Assembly: GCA_002794465.1 (NCBI GenBank)
Contig: MTSL01000141.1
Coordinates: 10,339 to 31,249 of the forward strand
DNA: 20,911 nt
Reading direction: 5' to 3'
Origin: Paramicrosporidium saccamoebae KSL3
Taxonomy: Eukaryota; Fungi; Cryptomycota
Shown here one piece after another: positions 3,097 to 20,899 of this stretch. The position numbers were made by a program, and so were the translations under genes. The notes under the pieces were generated by a model that was not told the origin of the DNA, searched no databases, and saw nothing but the letters and a program-made list of their open reading frames with translations. Numbering within the stretch: position 1 is the first letter of the stretch; every line of letters begins with the position of its first letter.

Positions 3097-4056
3097 ATGC
3101 TCTATTTGTTCTTCAGGATTGTCGTTCTGGCAAGTCTCTTTGGGAGTCTGTTGACGGCAAAGAGGACCCTACAAGTGGAGCAGATCATGCCACCCAATGG
3201 AGCCCTATTGAAGCCGTTTCTTGTGCCACGCACCGTGGGCAGTGATTCGCATCAAAACATCCAGGACTTTGTTCGACAGCACTTTCAGGCCCTTGGCTGG
3301 CATTTTGAGACTGATCGGTTCCAGAGAGACACTGTTATTGGGAAAAAAGTATTTACAAATCTCATCGCCACTGCTAATCCCTTCGCCAAACAACGCATCA
3401 TTCTGTGTGCGCATTATGACTCAAAGATTGATTTTATGGACGGCTCGCAGAAAGTGACCAATTTTGTGGGTGCAACCGACTCGGCATGGCCTTGTGCCCT
3501 GTTGCTTGAACTGGCTGCATCGCTTCCCCGTGGTTCAGATGATCTGACCATTCAAATGGTATTCTTTGACGGCGAAGAGAGTTTTCTGGATTGGAGCCGA
3601 TCCGACTCTCTTTATGGCGCAAACCACTTGGCCCATGTATGGTCCGGTTCGGCTCAATCCCATCAGCGTCTCGACAAGATCAAGTACATGATGCTTCTGG
3701 ACCTCCTAGGCGCACCGTCTCCAAAGTTCTACAGCTTCTTCCAGGACACTGCGCCTGTGTTTCAGAAACTCGCCCTTGCTGAATCTGACGCACGGAGAAA
3801 AGGTCTTTTACGAACGCCAAGACGTCTCTTTATCACTGAACAGTCCATTATGGGCCGGCAGCACGGTCACTATTACGTAGAAGATGATCATGTGCCCTTC
3901 TCCATGCGCAATGTGCCAATCGTCCACATCATTCCCACCCCGTTCCCCTCCGTCTGGCACAAGAAGCACGATGATGTCACAGCCCTCGATCCAGACACTT
4001 GCCACGATCTGGCCTTGATCATCCATACCGTCATCCACCGTGAACTGGCCGCTTGA
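3097..4056 (+). CDS. QPCT: Glutaminyl-peptide cyclotransferase (peptidase M28 family, QC-like) with N-terminal signal/anchor
   Basis: Motifs AHYDSK, GATDSAWPC, FFDGEES, LYGANHLA, LLDLLG, EDDHVPF and PFPSVWH are present, so the Zn-ligand D/E/H are intact. The ATG at 3097 gives the hydrophobic leader MLYLFFRIVVLASLFGSLLTA. An upstream in-frame ATG at 3064 is an alternative start. Confidence 0.9.
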   Translation: MLYLFFRIVVLASLFGSLLTAKRTLQVEQIMPPNGALLKPFLVPRTVGSDSHQNIQDFVRQHFQALGWHFETDRFQRDTVIGKKVFTNLIATANPFAKQRIILCAHYDSKIDFMDGSQKVTNFVGATDSAWPCALLLELAASLPRGSDDLTIQMVFFDGEESFLDWSRSDSLYGANHLAHVWSGSAQSHQRLDKIKYMMLLDLLGAPSPKFYSFFQDTAPVFQKLALAESDARRKGLLRTPRRLFITEQSIMGRQHGHYYVEDDHVPFSMRNVPIVHIIPTPFPSVWHKKHDDVTALDPDTCHDLALIIHTVIHRELAA

Positions 4057-5898: not shown

Positions 5899-6689
5899 CA
5901 TGAAACATGCTTTCGAATTTGAATTAATCGTCGATCTATAGCCTTTACTTGCTCAGCATCAATCCGGCTGGCATTCTCTAACAACTCTTTAATTCGAGGT
6001 AGTTCTTCGAGAGAGCTGGGACACTTTTCTTGTAAATAAGCATCCATACTTGGAGAATCACAAGCCATCTTCAAGGCGCAACCCGCCAATGTCGCTGGTT
6101 TGTACAATAGCAGGGCATCGGTTGCGCAAATCCGATCCAACATCTTTCCAGCTTCCATAGGCATTTCAGCACTGAAATCACCCGTTCCTCCAATTTTGTA
6201 GTCCAGCAATAGTCCTGCCAACGGTGTTGCCGGCGCAAAGAAATTAATTTGGTACTCCAAGGCAGCCAGCAGGACAAATTCCATCTCCCCCAACCATTCA
6301 ACGTTGGTGTTTGGTATCTTTCCTGCGAAATCGCTCATCCCCAAATGCAGATTCTCGCACTTTGTGGCCAACCAGACACAGCAAAGCATAGTGTGCTTTG
6401 GGTCGTGAGTGAGCCAGCTGTGACGGAGGGTCAGACGTGTAAGCAGCCAGTGAGCAGTGGCGGCCACGGAGGGAGGGAACTTGAAATAGCGGCAGAGCTC
6501 GGGGATCTTTAGACGATAGAATTGGAGGAGTGCAGATTCCTCAGCGGCCGTTGGCGGTTCCAGGTCAGCAGGGAGCAGAGCCTTTATTCCAGCGACGGCC
6601 TCTTGGTTCACTGCATGTCTTAATTCGGCCACCTTTTCCCTCGTATAAATGCAGTGCCTATTATGATGAGACCGACTGAAGTAGTCCAT
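5898..6689 (-). CDS. CCNH: Cyclin H / Ccl1 (TFIIH CAK cyclin), 263 aa
   Basis: The true start is probably MDYFSRSHHNRHCIYTREKVAELR (ATG at 6689), matching the cyclin H N-terminus. Cyclin box: EESALLQFY...FPPSVAATAHWLLTRL...HDPKHTMLCCVWLATKCEN, then EMEFVLLAALEYQI. The 98-aa upstream extension in the ORF track overlaps the antisense CCDC90-like gene. Confidence 0.88.
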   Translation of the reverse strand: MDYFSRSHHNRHCIYTREKVAELRHAVNQEAVAGIKALLPADLEPPTAAEESALLQFYRLKIPELCRYFKFPPSVAATAHWLLTRLTLRHSWLTHDPKHTMLCCVWLATKCENLHLGMSDFAGKIPNTNVEWLGEMEFVLLAALEYQINFFAPATPLAGLLLDYKIGGTGDFSAEMPMEAGKMLDRICATDALLLYKPATLAGCALKMACDSPSMDAYLQEKCPSSLEELPRIKELLENASRIDAEQVKAIDRRLIQIRKHVS

Positions 6690-14169: not shown

Positions 14170-15249
14170 ATGATCACGGCACCCACTGCCCAAAATGAGA
14201 TTATTGCATTGCCCAAGGGCGAACATCCCATTCCGCTGGCCACTTTGAGGGCATTATACTTGCCGGGCGAGAATACAGCAGCCATCTCAGTTGCACAACT
14301 TTCCACGAAAGAGCAACATCGAGTGTTAGTGACGGGCGGCGCGGGATTCGTAGGTTCCCATTTGGTAGACCGTCTGATGCTACTCGGCCACAAAGTTATT
14401 GTGGTGGACAACTACATGACCGGCAGCCCAAACAATATCAAACATTGGCGCAATCACCCCAATTTCACAATAGTGGAGCATGACATTGTAGAGCCCTTTA
14501 TGGTGGATTGTGACCGCATCTTCCATCTAGCCTGTCCGGCCTCGCCGCCACACTATCAGGCAGATGAGATCAAGACGGTCAAAACATGCGTCTCAGGCAC
14601 CACCAACGTCCTCGATGTTGCCAAGCGTAACGGGGCACGCTTCCTCTTTACAAGCACCTCGGAGGTGTATGGGGACCCCGAAGTGCATCCACAGACGGAA
14701 GAGTATCGCGGATGTGTCAATCCCATTGGCGTGCGGGCCTGCTATGATGAAGGAAAGCGGTGTGCAGAGACGCTGGCATATTGCTACCAGCGCCAACATG
14801 CTTTAGAAGTGCGGGTGGCGCGCATATTCAACACTTATGGCCCGCGGATGGACCCAAAGGACGGGAGGGTGGTGAGCAATTTTGTCATGCAAGCATTAAC
14901 GGGTCAACCCATTACCATCTACGGAAGTGGAGAGCAGACACGGTCATTCCAATTTGTACACGACCTAGTGTCAGGATTGCTGGCGCTCATGGAGAGCAAC
15001 TTTAGCATGCCGGTGAATCTTGGGAACCCTGAAGAATACCAGATCAAAGAATTTTCCACCATCATCCGCGACATTGTGCACAGTCAATCTGGCATTGTTC
15101 ATTTAGAGGCCACACAGGATGACCCGCAGCAGCGCAAGCCTGATATCTCGCGGGCAGACAAGGTCCTGGGATGGAAGCCAAACTATCCGCTGAGGGCGGG
15201 CCTAGTTGATACTATAGAATACTTTCGTCGCATATGCGATGGAAAATAG
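14170..15249 (+). CDS. UXS1: UDP-glucuronate decarboxylase (UDP-xylose synthase), 359 aa
   Basis: Extended SDR motifs VLVTGGAGFVGSHLVDRL, IFHLACPASP, TSTSEVYGDP, YDEGKR (YxxxK), RIFNTYGP, DGRVVSNF, NLGNPEE and DDPQQRKPDI. Confidence 0.96.
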   Translation: MITAPTAQNEIIALPKGEHPIPLATLRALYLPGENTAAISVAQLSTKEQHRVLVTGGAGFVGSHLVDRLMLLGHKVIVVDNYMTGSPNNIKHWRNHPNFTIVEHDIVEPFMVDCDRIFHLACPASPPHYQADEIKTVKTCVSGTTNVLDVAKRNGARFLFTSTSEVYGDPEVHPQTEEYRGCVNPIGVRACYDEGKRCAETLAYCYQRQHALEVRVARIFNTYGPRMDPKDGRVVSNFVMQALTGQPITIYGSGEQTRSFQFVHDLVSGLLALMESNFSMPVNLGNPEEYQIKEFSTIIRDIVHSQSGIVHLEATQDDPQQRKPDISRADKVLGWKPNYPLRAGLVDTIEYFRRICDGK

Positions 15250-15308
15250 TTTTGCACATACAAAGAATAGACACTCCTGATTGGTCAGAGCCCTGGACGA
15301 CGCATAAT

Positions 15309-16754
15309 ATGGTCCTGACGAACCTTTCACAGTCGCATGTACAGCCACCGGCCCCCGTTCCAAACGCATCCAAGACGGAAACGACAGGCGTAGTTGTGCC
15401 AGTGTACTCGACGTGGTTTGAGTTTGGCACAGTACATGATATCGAGCGACGAACACTGCCCGAGTTCTTTGGCGAGGCGGACGATAAAACACCCGCCACA
15501 TACTTGGAATATCGCGACTTTATGGTACAAACGTACCGTCTGCGGCCTCACGACTATCTCACAATAACGACGTGTCGACGACACTTGACGGGGGATGTGG
15601 GTGCCATCGTCAGAGTGCATGCGTTCCTGGAGCAATGGGGACTGATAAACTTTCAGGCCGAGGTACCGGTAAAGCGGGAGCGACCGATGCCAACAGTGGC
15701 ACCACAGGTTGATGTGCTTAGTGCACTACATGGAGCAGTACAAACAGCGTCGCTGAGGACGAGTCTGGCCACTGCTTTGGACCGTACGGCAATGCCACCG
15801 GCACGCATTGTCTGTTCGCAGTGCAAGGTAGAATGTCCCCGTCTGTATTATACGCACACTATGGCCACGGGCGATGCTCTGAATCTGTGTGGACTATGTT
15901 ATGCAGAGGGAAAGTACCCCACGGGACTGCATTCCGGCGACTTTTCCAAACTCGATGTGGCCTCTTTGGAGCAGGGCATGCGTGTCCCATGGACTGACGA
16001 AGACATATTGACACTACTCTCAGCTATTGAGGAGTTTTCAAATGATTGGGACTCTGTGGCGCAAAAAGTCGGACGACCAAAGGATCAGTGTGTTTTCCAA
16101 TTCCTTAGACTTCCTGGGATCGAAACTATTGATGCTAAAACCACCGACGCAATAGGAGCTGAATTGGCCAAGACTACCCATGTGACCGGGAGCATCCCCT
16201 TTGCTACGGCAGCAAATCCCATCATGTCGACTTTGGCGTTTCTTGCATCTGCTGTGCATCCCAAGGTGGCTGCTGCAGCAGCTCAGGCGGCCCTTGCAGA
16301 GGTTGTTCAGATGAAATCTGAAGAGTCAGCTACTCCCGAACCGCCCACCTCCGAGTCATTGGCACAAGTATCCGCCGCTGGTCTGGCATGTGCCTCGGCC
16401 CGGTCTTCCGTCTTTGCTGATGAGGAATCTAAAAAGACTTGTCGTCTGCGCGACACTCTGGTTGATCTGCAGTTGCAGAAATTGCGAGTCAAGATGGCGC
16501 TGTTCGAAGACCTGGAACGGTCGTTGGACGAGGATCGCAAAGAGTTGGAGCAGCAGCGGTTGCAACTTTTCTTTGATCGCTTTAATTTGCGAAAACAAAT
16601 GATGGCTATTGAGAACAAGGCCGGTTTGGAAGTCATTTCTGATCGCATGGAAATTGATGGGGATGGCGAGACTGGGGAAAATGGAAAAACTGAAGAGAAT
16701 GGAGAGGTTAAAAGTGTCTTGCCACCTCCAGGCACTAATGTTACAAAATTATAA
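15309..16754 (+). CDS. SWI/SNF-RSC core subunit (Swi3/Rsc8/SMARCC family), 481 aa
   Basis: Domains in order: SWIRM (WFEFGTVHDIERRTLPEFF...RVHAFLEQWGLINFQ), ZZ finger (CSQCKVEC...LCGLCYAEG), SANT (WTDEDILTLLSAIEEFSNDWDSVAQKVG), PFATAANPIMSTLAFLAS, and a C-terminal coiled coil (LQLQKLRVKMALFEDLE). ATG 15309 is preferred because the listed start overlaps the UXS1 stop. The Swi3 versus Rsc8 paralog cannot be resolved by eye. Confidence 0.93.
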   Translation: MVLTNLSQSHVQPPAPVPNASKTETTGVVVPVYSTWFEFGTVHDIERRTLPEFFGEADDKTPATYLEYRDFMVQTYRLRPHDYLTITTCRRHLTGDVGAIVRVHAFLEQWGLINFQAEVPVKRERPMPTVAPQVDVLSALHGAVQTASLRTSLATALDRTAMPPARIVCSQCKVECPRLYYTHTMATGDALNLCGLCYAEGKYPTGLHSGDFSKLDVASLEQGMRVPWTDEDILTLLSAIEEFSNDWDSVAQKVGRPKDQCVFQFLRLPGIETIDAKTTDAIGAELAKTTHVTGSIPFATAANPIMSTLAFLASAVHPKVAAAAAQAALAEVVQMKSEESATPEPPTSESLAQVSAAGLACASARSSVFADEESKKTCRLRDTLVDLQLQKLRVKMALFEDLERSLDEDRKELEQQRLQLFFDRFNLRKQMMAIENKAGLEVISDRMEIDGDGETGENGKTEENGEVKSVLPPPGTNVTKL

Positions 16755-16865
16755 ACAACCGATTTCATGGCTGGGTTAGTGAGTGGCTGTATTGTCTTGA
16801 GAGCAAGCCAATAATGAGTGGCTGAAGCCCTTGTTCATAAAAGGCGTCTCTGCCGCAATTCCGCC

Positions 16866-18923
16866 ATGAATTCCGCCCCTCCGGCCTTTCCTACCGCTTC
16901 CGTCCCTCCCACTACTTCTGCACTAAAATGGACTGTATGCCGTAAAAATAACAAAAAGTGTCGCATCTCCACCCATCTCTCTCATGAGGCACATCTCAAG
17001 GTGCCGTCTGACCATATTGCGGCTTCGTCGGGACATTTCCACCTCTACGCCCAAAAATTCCAACGGGCCAATACCATCCCCACAGTGCACTTGGTGTTTC
17101 TGGCAGGCGGGCCGGGCGGTATCGGTCGGAGTTACGACGGTTTTATCGATCAATTACTACAACTGGACGGCAGATATGCCTGCTATACAGTGGATCATCG
17201 CGGCCTGGGTCGGTCGGGCTTAATCACCAACGATTCCTATCGAGAAATCGTCGACAGTCTCGACCACATTGTAAAACGTGCGCCCTTCCCCCTTCGCAGT
17301 CTGACCTTGACAAACTCGGCGCTGGATGTTGCACTTCTCGCTGACGCAATCAAGGAGCAGTCTGATTGGCGGAGCGGATCGCAAATTGCATTATATGGAT
17401 ATTCGTATGGCGCGCAGCTAGCACATCATATAGTAGAACTACGACCGAACCTATTTAACCAGGCATTTATTCTGGGTATTCCACCCCTAAAAAGTCTGAA
17501 AGTGGCGGCCAGTCATCAGGGGCCAGTGGAAATGTGCGAGCGTGACGCAGAGTGTCGACGTCTGATGGGGGGTGACGTGGCAAAACAGATTCGTCATGCA
17601 CTACTGAATATTTCCAAGCCAGAATACAATGAATGCACGCGAAAATTCTACTCCATCTGGTCTGCCCAACCTCATGCAAAGGACACACAGGGAGACATTA
17701 TGACGGCGCTGATCTGGCGAATGCGCTCCTTGATTATCAATAGAGCCCCTGGGTTGAATCGTGAAAGGAATCTACGAACTGTGCAGGTGGTCCTAGCAGC
17801 CATTAAGGCTACCAGCGACTGTGAACACCCAGAAAGCTACACCAAAGACGTACTCGTTCCATTACAGCCGTACATGGATGGTGTCGTGGCCATTAAGGAG
17901 AATGTCGGAAATGATGAAGAGAAGAATGAACGAAATGATGGGAGGGATGAGGGACAGAGTATTACGAAGAAAGTTATGGAAGGCGTTAAAGATGTTGCGA
18001 ATATTGCAAGCGTTGCAAACATTAGGACAGACGCAAAATTGGTTGATAACTCCCTTACTAATAGTCTCTCCAGACTGCAACCACAGCCTCCAGTTCAAAT
18101 TCAAAAAGTCGGTAATACTGGCTTGTTTGATAGGGAAAATGTTCCAAACTATGAAACATTGTGGGATCAGCCCTATGATGAGCAGTCAGAGGGACGATCA
18201 AACGAAATGGTCAACACTGTCGTCTTTATCGACAAGGATTACGATTTTGACACCCATCCACCTTCCCGGCTCCATTATCATGTTGATCTAACTCCGTCCG
18301 TTCTGTATCCCCCGACTTATCATGCCCGCTGGAAGTTTCTTCGACCTCATTTGACTGGAACCATCAAGTCGCAGCAGCGTCCCATCCATACATCCTACAC
18401 CCATTTGCACATGGCAAACGGTAGAATGGACATGATCACCACCTATGCCCCCGCCTATGCTCGATTTACTCAGGCCCAGGCTCCCGTGAAAAGTTGGATG
18501 TTGCTGGATCGACACGACCATGACGGTTTGTATAGTCCCTGTTTGTTTCTGTGGCTAAATGCCGCGGTGGAGAAACGCTCGATGGAAGAGGTAGAGGCCT
18601 GCGTCAAAGAGTCAAATGCCATCCGGCTGGACTGGTCGTTTCAGAGCTATCCGCAGTTTCAGACAATCTGGAAACAGGTCAAGTCTGCATCAAAGGTTCC
18701 CATTGAAGTATCTACCAGTTCAATACCGTCCTTTGTGCGTTCCTCAAATAGCCTAACTAGACAAACCACAAAAGGGTCGCCGGATTATCGCTTGCTGCTG
18801 GTCGGCGGGTCTATTGTATTATTCATGCTGGTCGGCCTTGCATGGTTCTTCCGAAAACGTCGCAGTCGCTCTTCCTCCGGTTCGCTTGCAAGTGCCGTGG
18901 CAGAAATTGTTGTTAATGCCTAA
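16866..18923 (+). CDS. Alpha/beta-hydrolase (S33/TAP-like peptidase or esterase) with C-terminal membrane anchor, about 685 aa
   Basis: Motifs FLAGGPGG, YTVDHRGLGRS, nucleophile elbow YGYSYG, candidate acid NGRMDMIT and candidate His DRHDHDG. TM LLLVGGSIVLFMLVGLAWFF is followed by RKRR. The start is uncertain: 16866 is the first ATG, and the listed ORF opens at GTG 16818. Confidence 0.8.
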   Translation: MNSAPPAFPTASVPPTTSALKWTVCRKNNKKCRISTHLSHEAHLKVPSDHIAASSGHFHLYAQKFQRANTIPTVHLVFLAGGPGGIGRSYDGFIDQLLQLDGRYACYTVDHRGLGRSGLITNDSYREIVDSLDHIVKRAPFPLRSLTLTNSALDVALLADAIKEQSDWRSGSQIALYGYSYGAQLAHHIVELRPNLFNQAFILGIPPLKSLKVAASHQGPVEMCERDAECRRLMGGDVAKQIRHALLNISKPEYNECTRKFYSIWSAQPHAKDTQGDIMTALIWRMRSLIINRAPGLNRERNLRTVQVVLAAIKATSDCEHPESYTKDVLVPLQPYMDGVVAIKENVGNDEEKNERNDGRDEGQSITKKVMEGVKDVANIASVANIRTDAKLVDNSLTNSLSRLQPQPPVQIQKVGNTGLFDRENVPNYETLWDQPYDEQSEGRSNEMVNTVVFIDKDYDFDTHPPSRLHYHVDLTPSVLYPPTYHARWKFLRPHLTGTIKSQQRPIHTSYTHLHMANGRMDMITTYAPAYARFTQAQAPVKSWMLLDRHDHDGLYSPCLFLWLNAAVEKRSMEEVEACVKESNAIRLDWSFQSYPQFQTIWKQVKSASKVPIEVSTSSIPSFVRSSNSLTRQTTKGSPDYRLLLVGGSIVLFMLVGLAWFFRKRRSRSSSGSLASAVAEIVVNA

Positions 18924-19083
18924 ATAGAGACCTCCCTGAAACGACCGGCAAATCCGTAGCAAAACATTTCACCGAAGAAGATTATTAATGATTGGTCGTT
19001 GTCCATCTCAAAGATCTAAGCATCATTTTGTTGAATAAAATGATCCCTGTACGTCTGCCCTTACTGAATTCATAGACGGTTGT

Positions 19084-20097
19084 ATGCGGGTGCTGCTGGC
19101 AAGGCTTGCGGAGCCACTAGGTCGCAAAGTCACCGCGCCACTGACAGAATCCTGTCAGAAACAGACAAAGGAGCTTTGTGACTTTGTCCAAAGATATTTT
19201 CGGGTAAGCAAGGTATACCGCAGTCCGTCCACAACATCGCTTATAGGCACGCCAGCCATAACAGTTGAGGGGCTTGCCGAGCACAAACCTCGTGTGAAAA
19301 TGGCAGAATTTCCAAATGACCCGCTCATCAATGGCGGTTTGCGGGACGGAGACGGTGAAACTCCAAGCGAGACGCTCGATTGCATCCTAAAAAATTTGAC
19401 AAAGATTACTCAAGTCCCAGACGATACGGGGATTCCGGTAGTAGTTGCTCGTGGGAATATCTTAACTCGGCTACTCGGCAGTCTAACCGGAAAAGCAATT
19501 GTACCATCCTATCCTGATCTGTACATGGTGACGTTTCACAAGGAGCAGGCAACCCGGGTCCAACGGATCTGGTCTGATTCTGGCCCACTGAAACCAAGTA
19601 ATCGACCCTCGGCACGAGCAATCCTTCTAAATCCAAAACGAGATGCCGTCTACATGTTTGAGCTTGTCGATCCTCACATGGTCACAAGTAGCATTATCGA
19701 ACACCGTTTATGGTTCACTCCCGGCGGTGGAATGGATCCCAATGAGGATCTATACACGGTCCTGGAAAGGGAACTTTGGGAAGAGTTGTCTCTTAAACCA
19801 ACCGAATTTCGAGTGTTGGGACACTTGTGGACAGGCCGAACGTCAATGATCTGGAAGGGTCTGCCTCATACATTTATAGACAATTATTTTTTGGTAGAGC
19901 TCACAAGCAATAAGAATACGTTTGGGCGTGGGAACTTGATGGAAGATGAGGTCGATGTACTTCGGTCGGGCCGATGGTGGCCTCTCGAGGAGTTGGCCAC
20001 TACCGAAGCAACAATTGTGCCTAGTCAATTGAGAGATCTTTGCAAGATGGACTTGTCAATCGCTCCTTGCCATTCTAATATCGGAGAGAGTGTCTAG
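19084..20097 (+). CDS. Fusion of a degenerate histidine-phosphatase (PGAM-like) domain and a Nudix hydrolase, 337 aa
   Basis: The C-terminal Nudix box GGMDPNEDLYTVLERELWEELSL (aa 215-237) fits GX5EX7REUXEEX(G>S)U, with RPSARAILL, WFTPGGG and RWWPLEEL also present. The N-terminal ~165 aa follow the His-phosphatase motif order (LARLAE, PLTESCQKQT, VYRSP, GLAE, GETPSE, VVVARGNI) without the catalytic histidines. Confidence 0.8.
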   Translation: MRVLLARLAEPLGRKVTAPLTESCQKQTKELCDFVQRYFRVSKVYRSPSTTSLIGTPAITVEGLAEHKPRVKMAEFPNDPLINGGLRDGDGETPSETLDCILKNLTKITQVPDDTGIPVVVARGNILTRLLGSLTGKAIVPSYPDLYMVTFHKEQATRVQRIWSDSGPLKPSNRPSARAILLNPKRDAVYMFELVDPHMVTSSIIEHRLWFTPGGGMDPNEDLYTVLERELWEELSLKPTEFRVLGHLWTGRTSMIWKGLPHTFIDNYFLVELTSNKNTFGRGNLMEDEVDVLRSGRWWPLEELATTEATIVPSQLRDLCKMDLSIAPCHSNIGESV

Positions 20098-20140: not shown

Positions 20141-20899
20141 ATGTTTGTTGCTGCATCTCATTTAGAATTAGTTGCAACAGGGAAATACGCCGCCATTCCC
20201 AAGACTCCATCCTGCTTGCTTGCCATTCTAGAAGCAATCCCACACGGCGAGCCACCCGAACTTTACAAACACTTACTCCCCGACCCTCATGTGTATCAAT
20301 GCTGGTATCGGCGGCGCGCTTGCCAACTTGCTTCCACGGGCCACACGACTAATGCAATCAAGCTGTTGGAACTGTCTATTTCTGGAAGTAAACCATCGGG
20401 TTTAGAAACCCAACTATTGGACACACTGTATGATTATGAGCGGGTTGTATCTCTGTTGAGGATGGCTGATAGAGAAGAGGTGCTACAACAATTCACATTT
20501 GAATTGTTTTCAAGGGACAGATTGGAAGGGCTTTTCAAATTACTGGATGGCAAGATGTTACAGCAATTTAAGCAGGAATTGCTGTCATCAACTCTTACAA
20601 TCTTGCCAAATGAGATTTCTCTGCTTTCTAATTTTACTGGAGACGTGACTGTTTTGGGCGAGAGCCTTAGCAGTGAGCCATTCTCTGTGAGGGAGCAAAT
20701 AGCCAGCTTGCGACATGATCCTAAAAAGCACAAAAGGATTATCCAACGGGTCATGGAGCTTTTGGTAAAGAGGAGAAAAGCTGGGACCATTGATGTATCC
20801 ACCTGGATCCAAATACAAAACTACAAAGAACTCGCCGAGCTTGATGAATTGCCGGGATTGGAGGAATTTTGTTTCAAAGAGTTGGAAGAATATCCGTAA
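20141..20899 (+). CDS. Sec39/NBAS-like protein (Dsl1/NRZ tether); short, or continuing beyond the window
   Basis: LLAILEAIPHGEPPELYKHLLP...WYRRRACQL..TGHTTNAIKLLELSI resembles the conserved Sec39/NBAS segment LAIL.nfPet..P..Y..LLP...WY..RA..ie......AL.L..l. The TAA at 20897 lies inside a possible donor (gtaatc at 20896), 16 nt from the window end. Confidence 0.65.
   Translation: MFVAASHLELVATGKYAAIPKTPSCLLAILEAIPHGEPPELYKHLLPDPHVYQCWYRRRACQLASTGHTTNAIKLLELSISGSKPSGLETQLLDTLYDYERVVSLLRMADREEVLQQFTFELFSRDRLEGLFKLLDGKMLQQFKQELLSSTLTILPNEISLLSNFTGDVTVLGESLSSEPFSVREQIASLRHDPKKHKRIIQRVMELLVKRRKAGTIDVSTWIQIQNYKELAELDELPGLEEFCFKELEEYP

Follow-up and report, generated by a model that had tools for sequence, protein, structure and literature searches.

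In the 20,911 nucleotides (nt) of the amoeba-infecting parasite Paramicrosporidium saccamoebae KSL3 analysed here (the window; contig MTSL01000141.1, positions 10,339 to 31,249), a gene at 19084..20097 on the forward strand encodes a protein of 337 amino acids (aa) in which a domain related to histidine phosphatases is followed by a Nudix hydrolase domain. The best explanation as a whole, to which we give a probability of roughly 0.55, is that this is a stand-alone intronless gene of a bacterial-derived family, and that its product joins a live Nudix enzyme to a dead phosphatase serving as a scaffold or accessory module. Judged by profile matches and by the register of its motifs, the N-terminal part of 165 aa is a true but degenerate branch-1 histidine-phosphatase domain. 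As the Nudix half has its complete catalytic box and evolves under strong purifying selection, the gene product most likely acts only as a Nudix pyrophosphohydrolase. The features referred to below, all on the forward strand, are the following; A2 is an alignment of 19 family members, AF2 the AlphaFold2 model, HMM stands for hidden Markov model, pLDDT for predicted local distance difference test and dN/dS for the ratio of nonsynonymous to synonymous substitution rates.

19084..20097, forward: complete coding sequence of the histidine-phosphatase-like/Nudix two-domain protein, 337 aa plus stop (list of open reading frames; collinear with homologs)
19084..19578, forward: degenerate branch-1 histidine-phosphatase domain, aa 1-165 (family HMMs; AF2 core)
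19102..19107, forward: R7-L8 at the 'RH' motif, with the nucleophilic His changed to Leu (A2, HMM alignments)
19222..19239, forward: SPSTTS at 'SSPxxRA', with the phosphate-pocket Arg lost (A2)
19240..19353, forward: fast-evolving, poorly alignable mid-domain, the former cap/'L.ER' region (dN/dS, indels, pLDDT 46-67)
19354..19365, forward: GETP, corresponding to the 'GES' motif (A2, HMM alignments)
19438..19461, forward: VVVARGNI at 'VSHGN', with Ser and the second catalytic His changed to A122 and R123
19513..19572, forward: conserved terminal beta-hairpin (PDLYMVTF...RVQRIW), ending at the fusion junction
19603..20031, forward: Nudix hydrolase domain, aa 174-316, from RPSARAILL to IVPSQL (Pfam PF00293, Foldseek, family profile)
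19726..19794, forward: Nudix box GGMDPNEDLYTVLERELWEELSL, aa 215-237 (regular expression and reading of the sequence)
20077..20094, forward: C-terminal tail NIGESV (A2; bacterial sequences)
18892..19075, forward: 184-nt GT..AG 'intron' of a public 1015-aa gene model, probably the last part of the upstream gene followed by intergenic DNA

A eukaryotic family of phosphatase-Nudix proteins

A word-indexed search of 5.8e9 proteins returned two relatives only, P0001 (332 aa, 61% identity to the window protein) and P0002 (367 aa, 32% identity over 94% of the query, E 1e-33). The exhaustive profile search, run over 1.84e9 representatives, yielded 20 matches at E<=1e-30, about 17 of which are full-length two-domain proteins of 307-371 aa, and the lower-ranked matches split into single-domain Nudix proteins (~160 aa) and single-domain histidine phosphatases (~185 aa). 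The order histidine phosphatase then Nudix was found in about 17 clusters from compact eukaryotic contigs, counted at 50% identity, and in one bacterial protein, P0121. Apart from the window gene, the family members lie on metagenomic or Logan contigs with eukaryotic neighbour genes, such as those for ribosomal P0 and a PCI protein; ATG7, ArfGAP and THOC5; or SART-1, ThrRS and uS13. Identity among members falls to about 23-30%, and the window protein carries all marks of the family: end-to-end collinearity, the RIW junction, WITPGGG, FIDNYF, RWW..EL..IVPxQL and the I-x-E-x-[IV] tail.

In most members the phosphatase catalytic residues are all kept (RHAxATGQ / SSPxxRA / L.ER / GES / VSHGN). Three proteins have a degenerate N-domain: the window protein, P0001, which keeps both His (S7/H8/H) and has lost Arg7 and the pocket Arg, and P0011, in which the whole RH loop is deleted and the N-domain has shrunk to 132 aa. 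Most members are intact, and each half groups within bacterial proteins that stand alone; in this small eukaryotic family of about 17 clusters the dead phosphatase is therefore a derived state, confined to the window lineage and P0011. Bootstrap support in the neighbour-joining tree is below 50% on the question of one versus two catalytic losses (window protein and P0001 versus P0011).

A preliminary description of the window, made from the sequence alone, had proposed an independent fusion in a eukaryote, reversed with respect to mycobacterial MutT1. The reversed order in a eukaryote stands; the protein is, however, not a one-off but one of a family of about 17 clusters, mostly with intact sites. 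The same description had called the gene the best candidate for an undescribed system in the window, which agrees with our literature searches: these recovered MutT1, with the reverse order, and no description of a His_Phos-then-Nudix protein. The family forms a natural comparison set, in which a live or a dead phosphatase domain sits on the same Nudix enzyme, so that the contribution of the second domain can be tested directly, a question that mycobacterial MutT1 likewise poses. The rozellid-like parasites in which this uncharacterised two-domain family of bacterial ancestry occurs depend on host nucleotides. The folds are those of ordinary enzymes and no new chemistry is implied.

Three NCBI assemblies (GCA_048222815.1, GCA_048222835.1 and GCA_048222875.1; loci L011-L013) have a single in-frame TAG where the 'RIW' junction has its conserved Trp, located in L011 at about 5917-5919. 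The phosphatase half and the Nudix half are otherwise intact and in the same frame; a natural split, read-through or a pseudogene are possible. The P0011 gene (L006/L007:8165-10924) starts 10 bp from a divergent ATG7 gene, which indicates an extremely compact genome, and the same contig has a second, unrelated NUDIX open reading frame of 111 aa at 3400-3735.

The N-terminal domain

When searched alone, aa 1-165 of the window protein matched nothing in Pfam or NCBIfam, even at E<=10, and homology was therefore shown via relatives. In P0002, Pfam recognises His_Phos_1 at aa 2-150 (E 8.5e-25), followed by NUDIX. Two HMMs were built without the window clade. The one made from intact eukaryotic N-domains aligns over the full length of aa 1-165 of the window protein (66.3 bits, E 1.6e-22 for one target), and the one made from 24 bacterial stand-alone histidine phosphatases also matches the window N-domain (25.1 bits, E 6.4e-10). 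Both matches are in register at R7-L8, at APLTE..Q (aa 18-28), at RSP (aa 46-48), at GET (aa 91-93) and at VARGN with A122/R123, which places Leu8 and Arg123 where the two catalytic His would be. Alignment A2 gives the same assignment: the family consensus RHAxATGQ...SSPxxRA...RLxER...GES...VSHGN is represented in the window protein by RLAEPLGR, RSPSTTS, an unalignable stretch, GET and VARGN. Measured against what makes a phosphatase of this class, homology and fold are present, and the nucleophilic His, the second pocket His and the second pocket Arg are missing.

The preliminary description had already recognised a pseudo-histidine-phosphatase N-terminal to the Nudix domain, with both catalytic His replaced, from the motifs RLAE, APLTE, VYRSP, GETP and VVVARGNI, and all of these readings lie in register with the family HMMs. 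Its reading of GLAE (aa 63-66) as the 'L.E' motif has to be dropped, as the region of aa ~50-90 is not reliably alignable and is of low confidence in the AF2 model.

The best preserved part of the domain is found at its end. P144 and D145 are invariant in alignment A2, and the segment PDLYMVTFHKEQAT-VQRIWSDSGPL shows one difference only (R157 vs K) from the ortholog with 61% identity. With regard to catalysis, four of five phosphatase catalytic residues are lost in the window lineage: both His (His8 and His123), the Arg of SSPxxRA and the motif of the Glu region. Arg7 is left, and the N-domain could presumably not form the phospho-histidine intermediate. No branch-1 histidine phosphatase is known to work without the nucleophilic His.

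The AF2 model, calculated from an alignment of 81 sequences, arranges the two domains compactly (pLDDT 84, predicted template modelling score 0.80). In the N-domain the core reaches a pLDDT of ~75-93 and has the beta-alpha-beta...alpha-beta-alpha-beta-beta order expected of the fold, which fits the phosphatase assignment made at first. Residues ~51-100 are of low confidence and coincide with the drifting region. A Foldseek search of the full model against the PDB did not add to this assignment, since all top 50 matches are Nudix enzymes (E ~1e-7), including RppH, hydrolases of diadenosine tetra- and hexaphosphate (Ap4A and Ap6A), Ndx1, YmfB and Dcp2 (6d1v, 3i7u, 1vc8 and 4ijx among them).

The Nudix domain and the C-terminal tail

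The Pfam NUDIX profile (PF00293) covers aa 179-307 with an E-value of 4e-13, and aa 170-320 are modelled with a pLDDT of ~87-98. The box had been called near-perfect, and rightly so: it departs from GX5EX7REUXEEXGU only in having S for G as the penultimate residue, the catalytic Glu and Arg residues are all kept, and R229, E230, E233 and E234 are invariant across the family in alignment A2.

When the Nudix half is compared with solved structures by its family profile, E. coli RppH ranks first (E 3e-11, with most of the domain covered); NudI, MutT, NUDT17 and the DIPPs come next, the DIPP matches being restricted to the box region. RppH (NudH) and the Ap(n)A hydrolases are thus the best solved relatives of the Nudix half and share the intact box with it, but identity is only about 15-20%, with values of about 18-19% in the Foldseek alignments. 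The window family has a signature of its own (RPSARAILL, WITPGGG, GHLW, FIDNYF, RWW..EL, IVPxQL and the C-terminal tail), and RppH lacks a fused phosphatase-like domain. The NCBIfam RppH equivalog scores are ~23 bits, compared with cut-offs of 116-259.

Some Nudix subfamilies can be recognised by substrate markers: a Pro at +15/16 for ADP-ribose, a Tyr at +16-18 for Ap4A, SQPWPFPxS for NADH, and the NuCoA motif. None of these was visible by eye in the window Nudix domain, and therefore no Nudix subfamily was assigned. A substrate with a polyphosphate chain (Ap(n)A, a nucleoside triphosphate or an RNA 5' end) would be the most likely class, which is not to be read as a conclusion. The inositol-pyrophosphate or nucleotide-pool substrates considered in the preliminary description found no support beyond a weak similarity of the Nudix box.

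Most eukaryotic family members end in an I-x-E-x-[IV]-COOH tail (NIGESV, NIEEEI, FIDEEI, FISEEV, TIEENV and others), which is not present in the bacterial Nudix relatives compared. The tail may be a eukaryote-specific C-terminal interaction motif.

Bacterial relatives and origin

Studying the relatives of the two halves separately leads in both cases to bacteria. The nearest named relatives of the N-domain are stand-alone phosphatases from Peribacillus, Bacillus, Lysinibacillus, Roseiflexaceae and Binatia. More generally, bacterial histidine phosphatases of ~185 aa align with the N-domain along its entire length, the final '...PD[VL][FY]...R[IL]W' at the junction included; they are single-domain proteins with RH and SHG intact, are uncharacterised (Bacillaceae, Chloroflexi and others) and are annotated as 'histidine phosphatase family protein' or 'phosphoglycerate mutase family 2'. 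These stand-alone phosphatases terminate with '...SNPDVF...ERIW', exactly at the fusion junction of the family. For the Nudix half the nearest named relatives are proteins of ~157 aa from Clostridium, Anaerolineaceae and Planctomycetota with ~30% identity. The RxxAR..WxTPGGG..RWW..EL pattern, taken for bacterial from the outset, does recur in bacterial stand-alone and tandem Nudix proteins, and the nearest relatives outside the family are bacterial. In neighbour-joining trees of each domain the eukaryotic family is nested inside bacterial sequences.

The family would accordingly have arisen by head-to-tail fusion of a bacterial-type histidine phosphatase of ~185 aa and a bacterial-type Nudix hydrolase of ~157 aa. 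A horizontal origin from bacteria, as suggested in the preliminary description, is plausible from these affinities, but the event was not recent: the divergence within the family is deep and the base composition is host-like. GC content and GC content at third codon positions of the window gene (0.49/0.49) match those of its neighbours, and therefore any transfer from bacteria would be ancient; a recent transfer was considered and has no compositional support.

P0121 is a bacterial His_Phos_1-then-NUDIX protein of 321 aa encoded on a 573-kb metagenomic contig. It shares with the window protein the domain order and an RHCEATGQ-type N-domain motif; however, both of its active sites are intact, its N-domain lies outside the eukaryotic family in the tree, and its profile score is below those of many single-domain bacterial proteins. 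It is probably an independent fusion. A GTDB scan with P0121 gave single-domain phosphatase relatives only, so that the frequency of the fusion in bacteria is poorly sampled.

The bacterial Nudix subfamily also includes Nudix-Nudix tandems and GNAT-Nudix fusions. The latter occur repeatedly (P0034, P0080, P0145, P0149, P0226 and P0237; the loci L005:5509-6567 and L004:5060-6555 are also concerned). One stand-alone bacterial phosphatase gene lies 7 nt after a GNAT gene, and another overlaps by 4 nt with the end of a gene for an MBL-fold (Apyc1-like) hydrolase, which hints at a functional link among the three enzymes. No Nudix gene adjoins the bacterial stand-alone phosphatase genes in the four loci inspected in this Rosetta-stone check.

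Comparison with MutT1

In mycobacterial MutT1 (Rv2985 / MSMEG MutT1) the Nudix domain comes first and an RHG histidine phosphatase second (PMC11784022), as the preliminary description had stated. Both proteins carry a Nudix domain and a branch-1 histidine phosphatase on one polypeptide. They differ in that the order is reversed, so that the window protein does not have the MutT1-type arrangement, in that MutT1 retains its RHG motif whereas the window protein lacks both His, and in that MutT1 is bacterial and the window protein eukaryotic. MutT1 was not among the sequence matches in the homology searches, therefore the two are independent fusions of different subfamilies. The RHG His of MutT1 is dispensable for the reported NDK-Pi activity, and its phosphatase domain is proposed to help in docking NDK (PMC11784022), a precedent for an accessory role of such a domain.

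Selection and the role of the dead domain

To estimate selection, the window gene and its ortholog at locus L002 were compared in one pairwise Nei-Gojobori calculation. The Nudix half has a dN/dS of 0.136. For the N-domain the overall value is 0.35, which means net purifying selection, and it is unevenly distributed: aa 1-47 give 0.21 and aa 116-165 give 0.24, whereas aa 48-115 give 0.66, with indels relative to the ortholog. In a nucleotide-level alignment of the window with L002 nothing aligned over the mid N-domain (19240..19353).

With the core and the junction hairpin under purifying selection and the former pocket and cap drifting, the most likely reason for keeping the dead domain is that it serves the Nudix half as a structural, stabilising or docking module, and not that it acts as a catalyst or phosphate sensor. 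The ancestor was probably bifunctional, as both active sites are intact in most members. Its Nudix half would have cut a pyrophosphate linkage in a substrate of the nucleoside-polyphosphate type, and its phosphatase half would have taken a phosphomonoester off a product. P. saccamoebae is without de novo nucleotide synthesis and without the kinases that turn nucleosides into nucleotides (PMC5701793). It is tempting to speculate that this lack made a nucleotide-directed phosphatase step dispensable or harmful.

Several points weigh against the explanation of a bacterial-derived protein with a live Nudix half and a dead accessory domain. The dS value of ~1.0 is near saturation and the dN/dS values are thus rough. 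The N-domain fold rests on profile homology and secondary-structure order, with Nudix enzymes only in the Foldseek top 50. The His residues retained in P0001 leave the time and the completeness of the inactivation in the clade uncertain, and the 1015-aa fused model, treated below, remains a candidate for the product of the gene.

An unlikely variant is that the dead domain is a repurposed docking or allosteric module, which would retarget an RppH-like Nudix enzyme by binding either a phosphorylated partner or the end of the substrate that bears the phosphate. If this were true, we would be dealing with a eukaryotic, order-reversed counterpart of the accessory role of the MutT1 phosphatase, and the docking module may be connected with the scavenging of nucleotides; in such a parasite it would be wasteful to keep a live nucleotide phosphatase.

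The preliminary description had left the choice between a phospho-ligand sensor and a scaffold. As a sensor, the dead fold would be a pseudo-phosphatase that, on binding a phospho-ligand or phosphoprotein, exerts allosteric control over the Nudix activity or directs it to a target. Arg7 is kept and R123 stands in place of the second His, so that a basic pocket could persist; the N-domain is under net purifying selection, and the phosphatase domain of MutT1 is proposed to dock phospho-NDK without the RHG His (PMC11784022). However, the pocket residues are not shared by the two orthologs (R7/L8/T-S/R123 in the window protein, S7/H8/D-S/H in P0001), which therefore argues against a conserved phosphate-binding sensor. 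The segment that forms the pocket and cap is also the one with a dN/dS of ~0.66, indels and low model confidence, and in P0011, likewise degenerate, the whole RH loop is gone. We regard the sensor as doubtful, and a scaffold or accessory module fits the data better.

A further explanation is that of a decaying relic without function, kept since its deletion would disturb expression or folding of the Nudix domain. The loss of the catalytic residues, the nearly neutral evolution of the mid-domain, the long branch of the window protein and P0001 in the N-domain tree, the reduction of the P0011 N-domain to 132 aa and the stop codon between the two halves in L011-L013 would all be in line with decay. 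Against this, the core segments have dN/dS values of 0.21-0.24, the junction hairpin differs at one position from the ortholog at a dS of ~1, and a reading frame of 165 codons has stayed intact in two diverged species, so that we give the relic little credence.

Non-canonical catalysis (mutase or phosphatase) by other residues has only the conservation and folding of the N-domain in its favour and is very improbable, as the nucleophilic His is generally known to be essential in branch-1 enzymes and no alternative conserved His/Cys/Asp cluster is common to the window protein, P0001 and P0011.

Gene model

The reading frame has an in-frame stop codon 15 codons 5' of the ATG at 19084, and from Met1 to its stop it is collinear with P0001, P0002 and 16 further family members in the alignments. 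The gene is intronless, as originally described, and its layout parallels that of the homologs throughout.

The top match of the exhaustive profile search (P0003) is PJF18126.1 from P. saccamoebae (Rozellomycota), a protein of 1015 aa labelled 'Exopolyphosphatase' in the public record. It consists of the upstream open reading frame 16818..18923, which has an alpha/beta-hydrolase fold according to Pfam and a transmembrane segment at its C-terminal end, plus the window reading frame, joined by excising 18892..19075. Across the proposed junction P0003 reads ...SGSLA/NGC/MRVLL. No exopolyphosphatase family or domain (Ppx/GppA or DHH-type) was found by Pfam in the upstream or the window reading frame.

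If the public model were right, the product would be a type-I membrane protein with an alpha/beta-hydrolase ectodomain, one transmembrane helix and cytosolic phosphatase-like and Nudix domains. The frame is indeed kept across the GT..AG boundaries, a possible branch-site-like TTACTGAA lies shortly 5' of the acceptor, and the model has been deposited publicly. It is nevertheless improbable, for several reasons. The upstream reading frame terminates with its own stop 10 codons beyond the splice donor that the model assumes. This donor (GTGCCG) is weak, and the supposed intron has stops in all frames, contains AATAAA and has a GC content of 40%. The equivalent Met is the start in 13 of the 19 aligned members, three others having short or moderate N-terminal extensions, and the hydrolase domain is found in none of them. 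Finally, the orthologs sit behind unrelated genes (L002; L006/L007). PJF18126.1 is thus probably a mis-merged and misnamed gene model, and it belongs to the only public Paramicrosporidium genome.

Genomic neighbourhood

The neighbourhood in the window is eukaryotic and very compact, with genes for a gamma-tubulin complex protein, an NGP1 GTPase, a cyclin and a SWIRM/Myb protein. An NAD-dependent epimerase/dehydratase reading frame (14170-15249) overlaps that of the SWIRM/Myb protein (15234-16754) by 16 nt on the same strand, which reflects either very tight gene packing or one mis-set start codon.

Downstream of the phosphatase-Nudix gene lies a reading frame of 252 aa (20141-20899) without a Pfam match. 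Its ortholog is found at L002:3-696, upstream of the His_Phos/Nudix ortholog and on the same strand; adjacency is kept and the order is swapped. This arrangement could be the result of tandem duplication and differential loss, of a rearrangement, or of a second copy located past the ends of the window or contig.

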